Source: Utricularia gibba
Lineage: Eukaryota; Plantae; Magnoliophyta
DNA: 64,000 nt
Assembly: GCA_002189035.1 (NCBI GenBank)
Contig: NEEC01000014.1
Location: forward strand, 62,001-126,000
Reading direction: 5' to 3'
The notes under the pieces were generated by a model that searched no databases, had not been told where the DNA came from, and saw only the letters and a list, made by a program, of their open reading frames with translations. Below, in pieces: positions 1 to 16,137 of the stretch. The stretch's first letter is position 1; each line of letters begins with the position of its first letter. Position numbers and translations under genes: made by a program.

Positions 1-60
1 GAAATTGCAGTGACACAAGTTGTGGAGTTCATCAGTGGAAAGAGCTTAGCTGAACTTTGA
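1..60 (+). CDS. 3' end of a gene, probably 5'-methylthioadenosine/SAH nucleosidase (truncated by window edge)
   Basis: Frame 1 reads EIAVTQVVEFISGKSLAEL-stop, resembling the plant MTN C-terminus as I recall it (AVTQVxxFIxGKxLxEL). Only 19 codons are visible. Confidence 0.5.
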   Translation, partial: EIAVTQVVEFISGKSLAEL

Positions 61-264
61 TCCTTTTTAACTCACATACAGTCATGGTCTTTTAGGGTCT
101 CAAGAAATTGACTTGTACTTCGTGGCATTGCATGAGCTTGCATGGTCCATTTTATGTGTGGCTTGTTTGATGTTTGTGGGGCAGTTCTCTGTGCAAGATT
201 GCTCCTTGGTCCCCCCCTTCAATTTTGCGCAGTGCTCGATTTCCACCTAAAACGGACGGGTCTT

Positions 265-339
265 TTAGAAAAATGGCCACTGTCTTCTTTGTACATTAGA
301 AAAATGGCCACCGTGTGAATTTTGTTAGAAAAATGGCCA
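265..339 (+). repeat. Three exact copies of TTAGAAAAATGGCCA in the left TIR
   Basis: Copies at 265-279, 296-310 and 325-339; inverted degenerate copies in the right TIR at 4126-4140, 4155-4169 and 4204-4218. Confidence 0.9.
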
Positions 340-839
340 TCCTCTAATTTTTTTTTAAAAAAAAATTTTACACGATTTTGTTATTATTTATATATAGTAT
401 AAATCAATAAATTTTGTTAATAAATATCATTTAATATATAAACATAAATAAATACATCAAAATCATCATTTTCTATTTTGTCATTGTATTTTTTAAAAAC
501 ACAGAATATAGATTAACAATAGTTAATTAAATAATTTCATTTTAATTATTAGCTTTCTAAATTTGTTTAAAATTAGTTGATTTATAAAAAAAGCATTCTC
601 TTTTATTTTAATTTTTTTTCATTCTTTACCCTAAATCATTCTTTACTTAAATTTTACAACCTTTATCTTCAAGCATTCTTTTTTTTATATATTTATGTAT
701 TCTTTAGCTTCAAGCATAGTTTTCTTAATTTTTGTATTCTTCATCTTCAATCATTCTTTTTCTTCATCTATTTAAGGAGAACTTCCATTATCATTTTGAA
801 AATACAAATCATTTCACAAGACGTATTTTCTTGATTGAG

Positions 840-3800
840 ATGGCATTTCAATCTATTATGGCAAAGATATTCTTCGGTGGAAATATCCAAGAATATCACA
901 ACGGATATCGGGCATATGATCAACCTCCAATCGCTATTACGAGCTTCGAAAGTCATATATCATTGGATGAATTGAAGAGTCAATAATCATCATTTTGCGG
1001 TTTACAAGTTGATCGATATGAAATAATAGTTTATGCACAATATTATGATTCAACTTCAAATTCTACAAGATTCATGGGGCTTGGATCAGATGTTGATTTG
1101 CTATATGTTTTCAATCCATTATATGCCGCAATGGGTGTTGATCTATTTGTTGAGGCTACATTGATACCGGAAGAATAAAACAATCCTAATTTCAATATTA
1201 ACAATCCTTTACAAGATGTGGAGGAGGATCAGCAATACGGTATTTATTTTTTTAAAATTTTCTATTATGATTTACGTAATTTTTATTAGAATAATTCAAA
1301 GTTTCATAATTTATGAAATTATTGATGAAAATATTGGCCTAACTTTTATCTCAAGTAGGAAGTTACATTTTTTTAGTTATTTACACTTTTTCGAAATAAT
1401 TAATAAATTTATTTACATATCTCTTTATCAATATTATTTATAGAATATGATTTAGAAAGAAGAGAAAAAAATGATCCTTTGTTCGATAGTATGGCTCAAT
1501 ATGATACTGACTACCATGAACAAGGGCAAGAAACCAATGAAAATGAGGAGTTGATTGATGAATTCTCTGAAGGATGGGTTTCACGAGGATTTATTGCCAA
1601 TGAGGATCGATTAGATAATTGGTCAGAAGATATACCTGATCCCTTACATCTGATGCCTTCACCATTCACAAAAAACCAACAGTTTGGTTCTAAATTGGCA
1701 TTTCTCAATGCGGTCACTCAATATTCAGTAAAAGTTGGCCGTGAGTTCTCTGTGTACAAAACAAATGAAGAAAAACATCTTGAATTGAGATGTTATCAGA
1801 AGTCATCTCAAATGTGCAATTGGAGGATTCGATGTGCTTATCATAAACGCCTTGATTTATGGAAGATAACTGCATTGGAGGAGCCACATACATGCCGGTG
1901 TCTTGGACCAAACGCACTCTCACATAGGAATATTGGAAATAATTATATTGCTGAAATAGCTAGACCACTATTAGAAGAAAATGTCACAACTAATGTGAAG
2001 GTTATCCAGACATTGATTAAAAGGGATACATGATTTACAGTGCCATACCATCGAGCATGGTATGGTATGCGAAAAGCATTTGAACTTGTTTATGGCACAT
2101 GGGAGTCATCAGTACCTCTACTACCTGCATTTCTACAAGAAGTTCAGACACAAAATCCCGGAACCATTGTCGTCTACAGACACAAAGAAACCAATGCTTC
2201 CGACATTAAAACACTCAAGTACGTATTTTGGGCTTTTGGACCATGTATTCATGCTTATCGATGGACTCGGCCTGTTATCACAGGAGATGGAACACATCTC
2301 TACTCAAAGTTCAATCACAAGTTATTGATTATCGTAACTGTAGATGCTTGTGGCCTTCTTCTACCTCTTGCATTTGCAGTGGTTGATAGCGAAAATGATG
2401 AATCTTGGTTATGGTTTATTCGGCTGCTCGGTCACTATGTTGTTGCAGGACGAGGGACATGTATTATATCAGATCGATGTAGTTCAATTCAAGAAGCATC
2501 GTCTCAAGTGCTGCCTTTCAAACCAGAATATGGTGGATGTCATCGTCATTGTATACGACATCTAAGATCTAATTTTCTCACTCATTTTCGTACCGAGGGA
2601 CTTAGGGAGAAATTCAATCAAGCGGTATATGCTACATCCATCGAAAAATTTGAAAAATACTTGATTGGAATTCAAAAACTCAATTACGCAGCTTGGGAGT
2701 ATTTGAATAAATTACCTCGAGAAACATGGACACTTACTAATGATGGAGTTGCTAGATATTTATTTAATTTCTTTTAATATATACATTTTAATTAAATTCA
2801 CTTAATATATGAATATAATTTTTAAATTTAATTTCAGGTGTGGTACATTAACAACAAATCATGTTGAAGTATTAAATGGAATATTAAAAGGAGCAAGACA
2901 TCTTAATTTGACATCATTAGTACATGTATTATTATAAATTTTAAAGGATATATATATTGTCTATATCTAAAAAATATATTATTTAATATGTGCAGGCTAC
3001 TTATATTAGATGACAACATTATTTTTCTAAGAGACAAGAGAAAGCAATCAATTTACGACATAAACACATCGAATATGCGGATCAACCAGGGAAACTATAT
3101 GCACATTGGGATAAGCCCATCCCACATGCAAAGATCCAAGTTATCGTTGCTACACAATCAAAGGTTCGAGTTATAACCCGTAAAAAGAATGGGAAAAATA
3201 AAAGCTACATTGTTATGGTTCAAGATGGAATATGTGAGTGCAGAAAATGGCAAAATTTTGGCGTACCATGCTCTCATGTACAACAGGTATGTCTATTTTA
3301 TTTATTTTATTAATTTGTATATTATTAACCCTATCATAAATTTATATACAGGCATGCAAGCGACTCAATATTGATCCTCGTAGTATTATTAATCCAATGA
3401 TGCATCTCGATCGTCAAATAACATCATATGAAGTTCAAATTCAAGCATTACGGTCTGAAGAAAGATGGGCACCACCAGCATTTACCTTGATGCATGATCT
3501 AAATCGAAAAAAAGATGTTCGAGTAGGTCGTCCTGAATCTAGAAGACATCTAATGCCTATGGATTTCCAAGCAAGTGGATCATTACACAATAGACCACGT
3601 AGAGATTCTGCTTTACTTGAAAATAGAAGCTACGAATCACCTACATCGGTACATCGATCTTCTGTTGATCTTCCATCCCAACCTACATATGGAAATATTG
3701 AAGTACGTCCACGATCTTCAATGCACAATCCACCTACTGGATGGAACTATACAACGAGCGAAACTGGACAATCTTCAAGGAATTCTACACAACAAAGCAG

Positions 3801-3852
3801 TTCAATCATTCATAATTTTTTAGGTAGATTATATTGTATTTTATTATTTTAA
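840..3852 (+). pseudogene. MuDR/MULE DDE transposase with SWIM zinc finger, inactivated
   Basis: Motifs VITGDGTHL, IISDR, CHRHCIRHL (CxxH), LTTNHVE and SWIM CECRKWQNFGVPCSH (about 3206-3287). In-frame stops at 984-986 and 2031-2033 (RDT*FTVPYHRAW). The intron ending at about 2837 has AT rather than GT at its expected donor. Confidence 0.9.
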
Positions 3853-4466
3853 ACAATAAATTTGATAATTATTTATATATTTTGAAATAAATTTATTCAA
3901 ATTAATATTTTAAAAATAATTTATCAAATTTTATAAAAAAAATACGTATAGAAAAGATTAAAAAGCTTTTTAAATATTTAAATATTTAAATATTTTTTGA
4001 ATAACTTAAAATATTTCGAAAATATTGTAATTTATAAATTTTAGACATTATTTATATATCTTAACTATTATTATTTTATATTATTTTAATAAAGAATATA
4101 ATTTTTTTAAAAAAAATATAGACGATGGCCAGTTTTATAAAGAATTACACACAGTGGCCACTTTTTTAAATCACCCCACTTTTCTCACACACATGTGAGA
4201 GGGTGGCCACTTTTCTAATAAACTCTAAAACGGACAATGTTTCACCTGCCTCGGGTACTTGAAAAATGAGAGCTCTTCAAACAAGACTCATGGCAAAGGC
4301 ATGGGCCTATGTATGCTGGAAGCCCCTATTTCTGAACTCAGCGGAATTCAAGGCAGCCCACGCGTTCGCAACGTACATAGTTTGGTGGTAGGAATTAGGG
4401 AAGATCGAAACGAAGCAACTACTTGTTGATTGTTCGTTGATTTTTGGAATGGAAGTGATTTCAGCT

Positions 4467-10397: not shown

Positions 10398-11858
10398 ATG
10401 CCAGAGATTCAACTGGGTGCTCACACTATCAGATCTCATGGGGTCAAAGTGGCTAGGTTTCACATGCACGATTGGCTTATTCTGTTGTTGCTTGTGGTGA
10501 TAGAGGTCATTTTGAATGTCATAGAACCGTTTCACCGTTTTGTTGGGGAGGATATGATGACAGATCTCAAGTACCCTTTGAAGGAAAATACAGTCCCATT
10601 CTGGGCTGTTCCGGTATGCTGTTGGTGGAATTTTGGATCTGACTGATAGCATTTGAGCCCCCAAGTGTTAATGATAATGGATGATGGAAATTCATGGCAG
10701 GTCATTGCAATAATATTGCCTCTCATTGTTATCCTGATCGTTTACTTTATCAGACGAGATGTCTATGATTTTCATCAAGCTTCACTGGGTATGATATCCT
10801 TATCTCATTGTTCGTTTGTCTCCATTCTTTCTTTTTGCATCTGCTGGCTTATTTTCCTGTATTTTCTTCTAGGGCTTCTCTTTTCAGTGCTTATAACTGG
10901 TGTGCTGACTGATGCCATCAAAGATGCTGTTGGGCGACCTCGGCCAGATTTTTTCTGGCGTTGTTTCCCTGATGGAAATCCTGTAAGCCCTGTTTGTATT
11001 TGTTTGCTAATGAATGTCTGAGTGCAGCATGGTGGCAACACTTCTGCATTGTGATGTGTAGGTGTTTGATAATGTCACCAGGGGTGTCCAGTGTAATGGA
11101 TTGAGCAGTGTCATAAAAGAGGGTCATAAAAGCTTTCCGAGTGGTCACACTTCATGTAAGTATTGAACCTCACTCGCTCTGAGATACTTAGTATGTGCGA
11201 AGGGGCGTATTTACCTTTCCCTTACCTTGATGGCAGGGTCCTTTGCCGGTCTTGCTTTCCTGGCATGGTACTTGTCGGGTAAAATTAGAGCTTTTGATCG
11301 TAAAGGCCATGTCGCAAAGCTCTGTATTCTCTTATTGCCCCTCTTGGTAGCCGCTCTAGTCGGAGTGTCAAGAGTTGATGACTATTGGCACCATTGGCAA
11401 GATGTTTTTGCTGGAGGTCTATTAGGTATCTGGACTAGTGTTAGTTCCCATTTTTTACAAGGTGTTAGTGCATTAATCTCCAATACCTGTTTCGAGTGCA
11501 GGAACTGTAGTTGCTTCTTTCTGCTACCTGCAGTTCTTTCCAGCTCCCTATGATGCCGATGGTATGAGCATTATTTTACTGTCTACAGTCTTGCGTCATA
11601 TCCACCATGCATACTTAGGAACCTATAGTGAATTTAAAGTCAGCATGTCGCTGCTGGCGGCATAGCAAATTATGCGGTATATATCTGTATTTGAAGAGAC
11701 CTAGTTCTTGGTTTTCCAATAGACTTGTAATTCTCGTTTGATCCGCAGGCTGGGCACCTCATGCATACTTCAACATGCTGGCCGAGACACAGAGTGGAAA
11801 CCATCTTGCAGTCCGCCAGTCGGATATCCAGACCATGAGCCTCGCATCTCAAGTATGA
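10398..11858 (+). CDS. LPP2: Lipid phosphate phosphatase (PAP2 family), multi-exon
   Basis: [49 protein letters not shown] and [17 protein letters not shown], with GT-AG introns. Confidence 0.92.
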
Positions 11859-13014
11859 CCTTTGACATGTTTGGAGGCTGGACATGATGGATCATGAGCT
11901 ATATATACCCAGATTCTCTGTTGGTGCAGGTACAGGTGTGATGATGTACAGAATATAATGTTGAAGCATTTGTTTCATTTTCAACACTCGCACCGTTTTC
12001 CACAGGCAGAAAGAAAATCCTGAACTTGTAATTGTAATGCAGAGGCTTTGAATTCTGGTTTTGTGTCTCTTCCTATTTGTGGCCCCATTCCTGGCCCTTG
12101 TGTTCTTCTGACCGCGATGAAAGGGAAGGGAGCTCATGATGTTGGTTTGCTTATTAGGGAGGGAATGTATCTATGCCCTCGGGTCCATCGATCCCTGCTG
12201 CCTGGGAGACGCATCCTCGGAGGCATGAGTGTGTATGTACGTTCATCGGACCCCTCTCCGTGCTGCGCTGAGTGGCCGGAATCCTCCACATTAGCTAAAG
12301 TGGTGCAATGGGCAAAGTTGATTGCAAATTAGTGAATGGGTTGCGACATCAAATCAAATGAAGACAAAAGGGGTTTGGGGCGCCGCAAGGGAAGCTGTGT
12401 CGCGCGCATAGCCGACACTGATTGGACACCAGTCTCCTCTTCCCGATGTAGATTGCAGCTTCCCCCCTGCCCTCTCCTCTGGATTCACACTGTAACATCA
12501 TATCACGCGCTTTCTCTTCTATTTAACACACCCCCACCACCACCGCTGGCTCTGGCTGGCTTACCGAGACAGACCTAAAAGCACCCCCATGGTGTTTCTT
12601 CCTCGTTCGCAAAGCACCTACACTCGTCTTCCTTGTTTGGAACAAGGAGAACAGTTAATGTGCTGAACAGTTATATTTATAAGAGAGAAAAAGGCCAGTG
12701 ATGACTGACTGAGCTTGTAAAAAAATATCATACCACTCACACTAACGAACTACCTCTTCTCTTAAACAACGGCATCACCATTGATATTGGCTTTTACCTT
12801 TTTTATTTATTGTGCGCATCTGACGCCAAACATCTTTTCCGCTGGTGCCCCCCTCTATTTATACATGAATTTCTCCTCAGAGCCCAACAGCCTCCCAGAG
12901 TGAGTGATGATGCCATGCGGTGGCGGACAAGGGCGGACGCTGTGCCGGAGGCGGCTGAGGGGCGGAAACCGGCCCCTCCGGAGGGCTGATGGGTAGATAT
13001 GGCCGCCATTTTGC

Positions 13015-13038
13015 GGGGAATCAAGGATCCTGGTCCGA
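13015..13038 (+). ncRNA. Candidate miR165/166 endogenous target-mimic site in a putative lncRNA (about 12890-13400)
   Basis: GGGGAATCAAG[GAT]CCTGGTCCGA pairs with miR166 UCGGACCAGGCUUCAUUCCCC: positions 1-10 perfect, 3-nt bulge between 10 and 11, one mismatch at 14. TATA-like TATTTATA at 12856-12863. Transcription is not demonstrated. Confidence 0.6.
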
Positions 13039-13407
13039 GTTTAGTTTTACTGTTACAATCGGAGTCTCACTGTCATAACCATGCATTTATCCCTCCTCTA
13101 GTTGATTTTCCGGTCGATCGATGTCTTGTGGAAGATTTCGGTGATTTTTCCGTGTCCCCGGTCACAGCTGCTGCTCAGCGCTGCGCTCACTCTTCTGGGC
13201 GTGTTGCATTGCAATCTGAAAATACATTTCGTGTGTTCAACACACAACATCATACAACATACGGCGGTTTCTCACTTGCGATCCAACAAGAAAATGGAGA
13301 GCCCGCGATATCTTCCCTCTGTAATCACACCTTTTCAGCACTACAAAAAAAAAACAAGAGAAAACAAAGAAAAGGCTTTGCTCCTGATGAAGTTTGCTAG
13401 TTCCTTC

Positions 13408-16137
13408 TCACGCTTTGTGCTCTGTGCGAATGTACGTACGAAAAGAATTCTGAGGTGACACAGTTTTTCCATTCACGAGCACTTGCTCCAAGAAATCCAC
13501 ACGCACGGACGTGAACTCGTACTTCTGATACACCAAAAGAAACATGGGCGACCAAGCAAGCATTCATGCCACCGCCGCATAGATAACGCTGGGAGAGAAA
13601 ACTGCATACCTTCCCCTTCCATGAAAAGTCCACGTGTTGGTAATAAGGGTCTAAGACAGTGACTTGATCCCCTTCTTTAATCTGAAACATGATCGTGATC
13701 GGCAAGCAATTTAAATCATGATTCACTAAACAGCATGCTTAAATTGTAGAACTGATAAGGGTCCCACCGCTTCCTTCTTTATTGCATACACGGAAAGGAC
13801 GTAACATGTCTCACTTGAATCACGCAGCAAATAGTAACTGTTACAGCAAAACAGTGCGATCTCAGAATGAAACATGGAAAATGTGTACAAACGACAAGCC
13901 CTCCGCACAACACACGTAGGATTAGCAGCAGTACACGGTGCAAAAAATGACAGATTTTGAGTAGGAAGAAATGACTCACAAGGGTGAGATATTGCTGTGC
14001 TTGAGACTAAGGGCAACATTTCCTACGATAGCAACTGCTTTGTTTAGACCTGTATGCAGATTCTCTATTTTCTCTCTTCGGTATGGAGGATTCACTAACA
14101 CGCAAAAAAAAAAAAGAAATCCATCACGAGTTCATCTTACAAAAATGAAAAAAAAAATACTTGTAGAATTTCAGTTTCCTTACAGTTGACACTCGCCAGC
14201 GACGAGACCAAGACAGCCAGCTGTTTAATCTTGGTCTGTGACTGGAAAGCAAAGAGACAGCTTTGATTAAATTGTGGGAGACCATATGATTCAGAACACG
14301 CACAAGGCTCGTTCATAACAATAAAAATTATACGCCCAAGAACGCTCAGTAGGCAACAACCGACAACAAACAATCATCTAAATGCAGACAACAAAGAACC
14401 ATCTAAAATGCCATCAACGCCAAGGCTGAGTAGGTTTACCAAGCTCGTTCAGCACACATTCATAGCCACGCGTGTAAGAATGTTTCAACATAGGACTACA
14501 TCATGTTCCACTAAATTAGCCATCAAATCAAGGTTTTCCATCACAGAATCATATATGCAAAATGTCGTCAAAGAAAATAGAAAACAGCAGTCAGAATGGA
14601 ATGTAAACCAGTATCTGCTACATAAGCATCTCACGCGAAGTGAACTATCAATTTTGTCAAGAAGTTCAACGATCTTAGCCACTTCCTGCATAGCATTGAG
14701 ACCAGGATCCCTCAGCGCAGCAGCTTCAAATCCACTCAGGGCTCTATCGTAGTTCTCCAGACGCTTATGTACCTGCGTTTAAATTAGTTTTTTTTTTAAA
14801 TAACAAGGAATCATACGGATAACTTTTCTTTTAGTAAGAAGCATACTAAAGAAGCTGATGAACCAAAAACATTAGCATCCCAGGAAAATGAATCAAATGA
14901 GAAATTGGGCTGAAGGGAAGCAGCATACGATTAAGGGATATCAAAAACAGGCGATTAAATAACCCCATACAGTAAACCAAACATTCTCTAAAATTTCATA
15001 ATGGCTGTTCAATCTAGGCAAAGGCATGGTCTTACTATAGCACAGTTGAAATAGAGGTCAGGATTTGAGGTCATTGTCACATCTTTTTCCTGAAAAATGG
15101 CATATTTATGTCCCAAAAATAAATAATGTGGACAGTAGGTCAAATGAAAACTGTTGAACTATGAACGTACAGCTTGCTGGTACGCTTTCAAAGATTGGGA
15201 AAGTTTCCTATGGTCCCATGATCCGGTGACAAAAAAGGATGTGAGGTAAGCATTTCCTAGGATATCTGCAATTACGAATAAGATGGATATTCAGAAATTT
15301 CAGTTATGCAGCATATTATCTTTTTCAATACTCACACCATGAGTTTCCATCCGCCACATCCAAACCAATAGCCTCCTTTGCATGCATTATGCTATCATCC
15401 ACAAGTTTGGCCTGGTCCTCTTCAGGTCCTGGAAGGCGGGAAACATTCAATCCTCTCTATATATGCTAGAAAGGAAATAGTAATCTTGCCTTGGGCCAGT
15501 TTCCGTTCAAGCATCGAAAGATGACAAAGAAGTCCCTTGTTTGGGCCCTAAAAGTAAGAATTAGAGTGAACATCTACAGTAAGAGAAAATCTTCCTCCAA
15601 ACTCATGGCATTAAAGACAATGACCTTGCTCAACCCAAGCATAAAACAATTCTTTGCGGAAGCTAAATCCGGTTTCTTCCAAAGGCAAGTACCTAAACTT
15701 AACCAAGCGCCTGCATTCGATGGGTTCAGCTTCACCTGAACATAAACTACAAATTCAGCTTCGATAATGATTCATTTAACTGAAGCCATTCTAACTCTGT
15801 CGGTATACGCTTCACTCACAGCCTTGGAAAGATGATCTTCTGCTTCTTTCTTGTACTCAGGTAATGCATCTAACACTTTTCCTCTTAGATACTCATAAGT
15901 TGCTCTTTCCACCGGCGTCCTCCTTTTCTCTGTAGTAATGGCAATTCAAAACAGATCACGCAAAAATGCTACACTCCGTGCAGAGACAAACTCTAAACCT
16001 GGTGGAATTTCGTCGAGCATCTGGAGGATGTGATTTGATTCATCGAGTAGCTTTGAGGTTTTTTCATTCGGATTTGCTGGAAAATGCGTGTCCCGAATCC
16101 GGTAGAGTTCCTCGACAGCCCTTGCCGCCGCTTCCAT
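13408..16137 (-). CDS. TTC5: Tetratricopeptide repeat protein 5-like (TPR plus C-terminal domain), multi-exon
   Basis: ELYRIRDTHFP, YEYLRGKVLDALPEYKKEAEDHLSKAVKLNPS, NYDRALSGFEAAALRDP and SVRVDFLEQVLVNGK; stop at 13408-13410. The start codon is uncertain. GC donor at 15489 and an apparent +1 indel at 15546-15549. Confidence 0.85.

Follow-up and report, generated by a model that had tools for sequence, protein, structure and literature searches.

A candidate natural miR166 target mimic in a transcribed non-coding unit between LPP and TTC5 of Utricularia gibba

A single site complementary to miR166, interrupted at its centre by a bulge of three nucleotides, lies within a transcribed non-coding unit between the genes LPP and TTC5 of Utricularia gibba. 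The match is far better than chance would be expected to provide in the 64-kb window (the whole stretch of DNA that was analysed, 64,000 nucleotides), and we regard it as a plausible natural miR166 mimic, of a kind already known from Arabidopsis and tomato (eTM166). The site, the unit that holds it and the neighbouring features are the following.

13015–13038, + strand: site complementary to miR166, with GAT as a bulge of 3 nt at its centre and a single mismatch, at miRNA position 14 (exact match, pairing)
12889–13368, probably + strand: transcribed non-coding unit holding the 24-mer (contigs of RNA runs; ORF broken in other accessions)
12856–12863, + strand: TATA-like box TATTTATA (sequence; the contig start that recurs, 12889, follows 26–33 nt downstream)
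13345–13354, + strand: run of ten A in the A-rich stretch 13341–13373 (sequence; contigs of runs X5, X6 and X7 end here; eight more A in X16)
11748–12175, + strand: last exon of the neighbour LPP (PAP2) (GT..AG junctions, contig ends, translation; PAP2 match on the upstream exons)
13408–13524, − strand: last coding exon and stop codon of the neighbour TTC5 (TTC5_OB match, translation, CT..AC junctions)

Results

The miR166-complementary site

The 24-mer GGGGAATCAAGGATCCTGGTCCGA was found by exact search of the 64-kb window at a single place, 13015–13038 of the + strand, which is where the first-pass annotation had located it. It was compared with the reverse complement of canonical miR166, UCGGACCAGGCUUCAUUCCCC. 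All of the ten 3′ bases pair with miRNA positions 1–10, and of the eleven 5′ bases all but one find their partner in positions 11–21, the exception being a C:C mismatch at position 14. GAT is inserted exactly where the pairing passes from position 11 to position 10, so that both the three-nucleotide insertion and the mismatch described in the first-pass annotation were recovered in the pairing comparison. When both strands were scanned with bulges of 0–5 nt, splits at positions 9–12 and up to three mismatches, no second bulged miR166 site was detected in the 64 kb. The energy of the duplex formed by the 24-mer with miR166 was −31.1 kcal/mol, against −44.1 kcal/mol for a perfect site (RNAduplex). 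Since miRNA position 11 is left unpaired in the optimal duplex obtained with the same program, the geometry needed for slicing is disrupted whichever way the pairing is drawn.

Rules for the prediction of endogenous target mimics (eTMs) ask for a bulge at positions 9–12, perfect pairing at positions 2–8 and few mismatches elsewhere (PMC6355781). In the 24-mer, the central bulge of 3 nt (2–4 nt being accepted) stands opposite positions 9–12, pairing is perfect over positions 1–10, which include 2–8, and the mismatch at position 14 is the only one outside the bulge.

Chance expectation and possible relics

From the base composition of the 64-kb window, the expected number of sites as good as this one was 1.0 × 10⁻⁶ per window and 1.6 × 10⁻³ per 100 Mb. 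On these figures the match of the 24-mer is not a product of chance, which bears out the earlier statement that it was unlikely by chance in 64 kb. The relaxed form of the published eTM rules allows about 0.84 chance sites per 100 Mb per miRNA, and hence it is the quality of the match, rather than the bare rule, that is improbable.

A 24-mer of this kind could also be devoid of any role of its own, either as a decayed MIR166 arm on the − strand, as a copied fragment of an HD-ZIP III target on the + strand, or by pure chance; we consider this reading decidedly improbable. The minus strand does read as miR166 plus three nucleotides, as a decayed arm would. However, no further miR166-like 21-mer with three or fewer mismatches was present in the 64-kb window, and no hairpin was found around the site, the fold z-scores of a 301-nt segment against shuffled sequences being −0.5 and +0.2 on the two strands. 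Rfam gave no mir-166 match over the window at the gathering score, nor over 12600–13500 at E values up to 10. Lacking a second (star) arm, a hairpin and an Rfam signal, the locus was rejected both as a MIR166 gene and as a decayed MIR166 arm. The absence of MIR166 hairpin arms on either strand, which the first-pass annotation had claimed, was thus upheld by the 21-mer search, by folding and by Rfam.

HD-ZIP III sites for miR166 code for the motif G-M-K-P-G-P-D. When read in the frame of the ORF at 12999–13400, the 24-mer gives G-I-K-D-P-G-P, with the bulge as one extra codon, and a copied target fragment would account for this likeness. The agreement in codon frame (window 12999–13040, + strand) may be either a coincidence, for which the chance is one in three, or a trace of origin. 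Target sites of HD-ZIP III genes are contiguous over 21 nt and lie in a coding exon of the START domain. As an HD-ZIP III target site the 24-mer was nevertheless rejected, because of its 3-nt interruption and because the ORF is disrupted in other accessions and codes for no domain, START included. GGGGAAT, with which the 24-mer begins, presumably agrees with the miRNA and not with HD-ZIP III sites, although the 64-kb window has no HD-ZIP III gene for comparison; this also argues against a copied fragment, and pure chance is opposed by the expectation of about 10⁻⁶ such sites per window.

Neighbouring genes

The flanks named in the first-pass annotation, LPP on one side and the 3′ end of TTC5 on the other, proved to be correct, with PAP2/LPP on the + strand and TTC5 on the − strand. 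The stop codon of LPP is at about 11856–11858, and its introns, of the GT..AG type, were confirmed by RNA contigs. TTC5, whose stop codon occupies 13408–13410 (− strand) and whose CT..AC junctions are likewise supported by RNA contigs, converges on the non-coding unit. Beyond TTC5 lies FAB1C, whose best named relatives are from the Lamiales (Sesamum, with 57% identity, and Erythranthe).

Some other observations were made on these genes and on the window. An extra C after 11907, in the 3′ UTR of LPP, was present in all four RNA runs with contigs there (X1, X2, X5 and X6), and it is probably due to the assembly, which would have either an error of one base or a private variant here. One TTC5 intron, at 15428–15489 (− strand), was reported with CC..TG ends; a shift by one base, which the alignment allows, turns it into a GC-AG intron (AAG|GCAAGA … TTCCAG|GAC), a minor U2-type class. 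Contigs of low depth running through the TTC5 introns at 14212–14664 and 13497–13639 were seen in X1, X2 and X5 and represent either retained introns or unspliced RNA. At the other end, window positions 1–4000 are AT-rich (31–33% GC), and an ORF at 2040–2777 (+ strand) resembles a fragment of a MULE/MuDR-type transposase.

The transcribed non-coding unit

RNA runs of the same organism were used as Logan contigs, which carry no direction. The 24-mer lies inside such contigs in five runs (X1, X2, X5, X6 and X7). Contigs over the unit extend over 12878–13526 in X2, 12901–13337 in X5, 12889–13368 in X6 and 12889–13336 in X7, and by them the unit measures roughly 450–480 nt, from 12889 to about 13336–13368. 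Contig depth over the unit was 7–26, which is modest for a decoy of a very abundant plant miRNA.

Transcript contigs of LPP stop at 12054–12175, with faint coverage up to 12464, and coverage is zero between 12464 and 12878–12901 in X2, X5 and X6. Because of this gap towards LPP, the transcribed unit is not the 3′ UTR of LPP, and a location of the 24-mer within that UTR was rejected on the same grounds. The only long ORF of the unit, at 12999–13400 (133 aa), opens at the fifth of the ATG codons and matched no Pfam family. In other accessions three indels each shift its frame: 2 nt are lost at 13048 and 5 nt at 13178, and eight A are gained at 13344. We therefore take the unit to be non-coding, and a coding gene at 12999–13400, which has no record as a called gene either, was ruled out. 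The host transcript of the 24-mer is thus non-coding, as the eTM rules expect.

Both TATA-like motifs that the first-pass annotation had listed, at 12856 and 12674, were present, since TATTTATA occurs at 12856–12863 and for a second time at 12674–12681. At the opposite end of the unit, the A10 run at 13345–13354 is a candidate for a + strand poly(A)-signal region or an internal-priming region.

Orientation of the transcript

We hold it rather likely that the unit is a separate RNA of the + strand and not a 3′ UTR of TTC5 transcribed from the − strand. The contigs start at 12878, at 12889 (twice) and at 12901, that is, 15–38 nt past the TATA-like box at 12856–12863, and the dinucleotide at 12888/12889 is C/A, with C at −1 and A at +1. 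In addition, the contigs of X6 and X7 share, directly before 12889 (window 12865–12889), 23–24 non-genomic letters (…GTGCAGTGCTCCGATATACGGGG) that end in GGGG. Template switching adds a non-genomic tag ending in GGG(G) at capped 5′ ends, and we infer that the letters found here are such a tag. To our knowledge they match no known adaptor or oligonucleotide; still, an adaptor, or a rearrangement or structural variant of particular accessions, could be the source of these letters. The tag is absent from the 64-kb window even when five errors are allowed, which rules out an upstream or downstream exon within the window, and it is absent as well from the collinear DNA contig of X16, another accession.

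GC makes up 67% of the first 110 nt of the unit and 40% of its A-rich final 200 nt. This composition suits the leader and the 3′ end of a + strand RNA, unlike a − strand poly(A) site at 12889.

The competing reading is that the stretch is a 3′ UTR of TTC5 of about 520 nt on the − strand, in which the miR166 look-alike would be in sense, a relic or an oddity and no decoy, given that a minus-strand RNA would carry a miR166-like sense sequence and would not pair with miR166. Some 3′ UTR of TTC5 must exist below 13408, and in X1 and X2 one contig leads from the unit into the last exon of TTC5 and across minus-strand introns, joining 12798/12878–13526 to spliced TTC5 exons with CT..AC junctions. 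Since the contigs of all runs are direction-less and those of X1 and X2 are contiguous with TTC5, a long minus-strand 3′ UTR keeps some probability, but we judge it unlikely. In X6 and X7, both from one 2024 study, the unit was covered at depths of 7.5 and 12.6 with zero coverage of TTC5 exons, although X6 covers LPP along its whole 1.2 kb. In X5, depth jumps about three-fold at the A-run, from 25 in the unit to 71–93 in the TTC5 exons. On the minus strand, moreover, a poly(A) site at 12889 would be preceded by the 110-nt segment with 67% GC, which has no A-rich element, and the loose end at 12889 shows the GGGG-ended tag instead of poly(T). In a relative (organism B), the TTC5 transcript contig continues for only 139 nt past the stop region. 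A 3′ UTR would also leave unexplained why the 3-nt insertion falls exactly at miRNA position 10/11.

Variation among accessions and comparison with relatives

The 24-mer was identical in the RNA runs X5, X6 and X7 and in the DNA run X16. Around it, positions 12846, 12875, 13048, 13053, 13060, 13178, 13214, 13301 and 13344 were variable. With about nine variants in 520 nt, a 24-mer would be expected to stay unchanged about 65% of the time, so that its invariance says little about constraint.

Simple repeats of variable length were also observed among accessions (X16 and X5) in windows 12429–12464 and 13345–13354, with an additional CA at 12429 and a 22-nt expansion of the CCCTG type after 12462. 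The A-run at 13345 has ten A in the assembly analysed here and 18 in X16.

In Abeliophyllum, another member of the Lamiales, LPP is not a neighbour of TTC5 and no such site was found within 10 kb of the TTC5 locus, and in Sesamum a comparison anchored on FAB1C revealed no synteny with this locus. The nearest FAB1C-anchored contigs end just after FAB1, before TTC5, and the TTC5 homologues reached via the Vitis representative all belong to distant species. Of the transcriptome of organism B, mapped with a likeness threshold of 80%, the coding exons of TTC5 alone aligned, with about 88% identity, and the 3′ UTR was unalignable; the transcriptome of organism C, mapped at the same likeness, gave no alignment. 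The 24-mer did not occur in the available part of the supplement text of a paper on lncRNAs of U. gibba.

Discussion

A TATA-driven, unspliced non-coding RNA of about 450–500 nt may be transcribed from the + strand, with its start near 12889 and its end in the A-rich stretch around 13340–13400, converging on the 3′ end of TTC5. It would carry one miR166 site about 126 nt from its 5′ end, with the 3-nt bulge opposite the slicing position (10/11). miR166 loaded on AGO1 or AGO10 would bind this site without cutting, the RNA would then titrate or destabilise miR166, and the levels of HD-ZIP III transcripts would be predicted to rise in the cells that express it. We consider the chances evenly balanced that the unit acts in this way as an endogenous target mimic of miR166. 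The first-pass annotation had proposed a lncRNA decoy that de-represses HD-ZIP III. This proposal stood in part, namely for the mimic geometry, the separation of the unit from LPP, its non-coding nature and the TATA-like box 26–33 nt upstream of the recurrent contig start; the strand is a probable one, and pairing with miR166 in vivo and the effect on HD-ZIP III are what the geometry would predict.

A real + strand RNA might still be young or neutral, being too scarce or expressed in the wrong cell type, and thus a mimic in form and not in function. The contig depth of the unit is modest relative to its neighbours, the TTC5 locus of Abeliophyllum gave no site, and about one chance site per 100 Mb per miRNA is expected under relaxed mimic rules. 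In addition, miR166 is usually one of the most abundant miRNAs, and in U. gibba the canonical form belongs to the most abundant families, with 96,986 reads from one locus (PMC8333044). Against a neutral transcript, the expectation of only 0.0016 sites of this quality per 100 Mb speaks for selection on pairing, and the 24-mer is unchanged in four other data sets, though this is weak evidence given that the same outcome would be expected in about two thirds of cases. Mimics can also trigger the decay of miRNAs and need not, therefore, be stoichiometric. On balance, a neutral transcript has in our view a minor probability, and a working miR166 mimic is the reading followed below.

Leaf polarity, the size of the meristem and the identity of xylem are determined by miR165/166 together with HD-ZIP III. 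Few natural decoys of miR165/166 have been described, and only a handful of these have been put to the test. With its one clean site, the present candidate would be easy to edit, and it belongs to a very compact genome that has little intergenic DNA without function. If it is a true decoy, HD-ZIP III dosage could be manipulated through it in a plant in which the form of the trap depends on adaxial–abaxial domains. Shifts of adaxial and abaxial gene domains are reported to control the peltate trap leaves of carnivorous plants (PMC10121167). That the unit is a lineage-specific miR166 decoy of U. gibba, which tunes the adaxial HD-ZIP III domain and has contributed to the evolution of the carnivorous organ, is a speculation that we consider very improbable. 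The comparison with known systems concerns the more limited reading of the unit as a mimic.

Target mimicry of miR399 by IPS1/At4 is reportedly the work of Franco-Zorrilla et al. in 2007. In IPS1, three bulged nucleotides face the cleavage site, so that slicing is prevented and miR399 is sequestered (summarised in PMC6162444). The 24-mer of U. gibba has the same 3-nt bulge geometry as IPS1/At4, whereas the miRNA and the pathway (phosphate homeostasis) are different and the IPS1 site is conserved across angiosperms.

For miR165/166 itself, the artificial mimics MIM165/166 and STTM165/166 and the protein decoy AGO10 demonstrate that sequestration de-represses HD-ZIP III, and such sequestration alters polarity, meristem and vascular patterning. 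MIM165/166 and STTM165/166 are engineered constructs and AGO10 is a protein, whereas the unit described here is a natural RNA locus.

The natural mimic At-eTM166-1 (ath-eTM166) is said to have been described by Wu et al. in 2013. Its over-expression changes leaf form (PMC8989527; PMC6162444), and editing of its site lowers the transcripts of PHV, CNA and PHB (PMC8989527). Like the unit of U. gibba, At-eTM166-1 is a non-coding transcript with one miR166-complementary site and a central bulge. The two differ, as far as is known, in the host locus, the unit here sitting between LPP and TTC5, and also in the evidence, At-eTM166-1 having been tested by editing and the U. gibba unit being known from its sequence and from contigs.

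The tomato miR166 mimic slylnc0195 raises the transcripts of class III HD-ZIP genes (PMC4683531). It resembles the U. gibba candidate as a lncRNA of an asterid that was predicted, and in its case tested, as a miR166 decoy, and it has features of its own in that it was discovered by strand-specific RNA-seq, was tested by VIGS and agroinfiltration and is virus-induced (PMC4683531). As endogenous miR166 mimics have been validated in Arabidopsis and in tomato, the U. gibba candidate would add a further example of this form of regulation and not a new mechanism.
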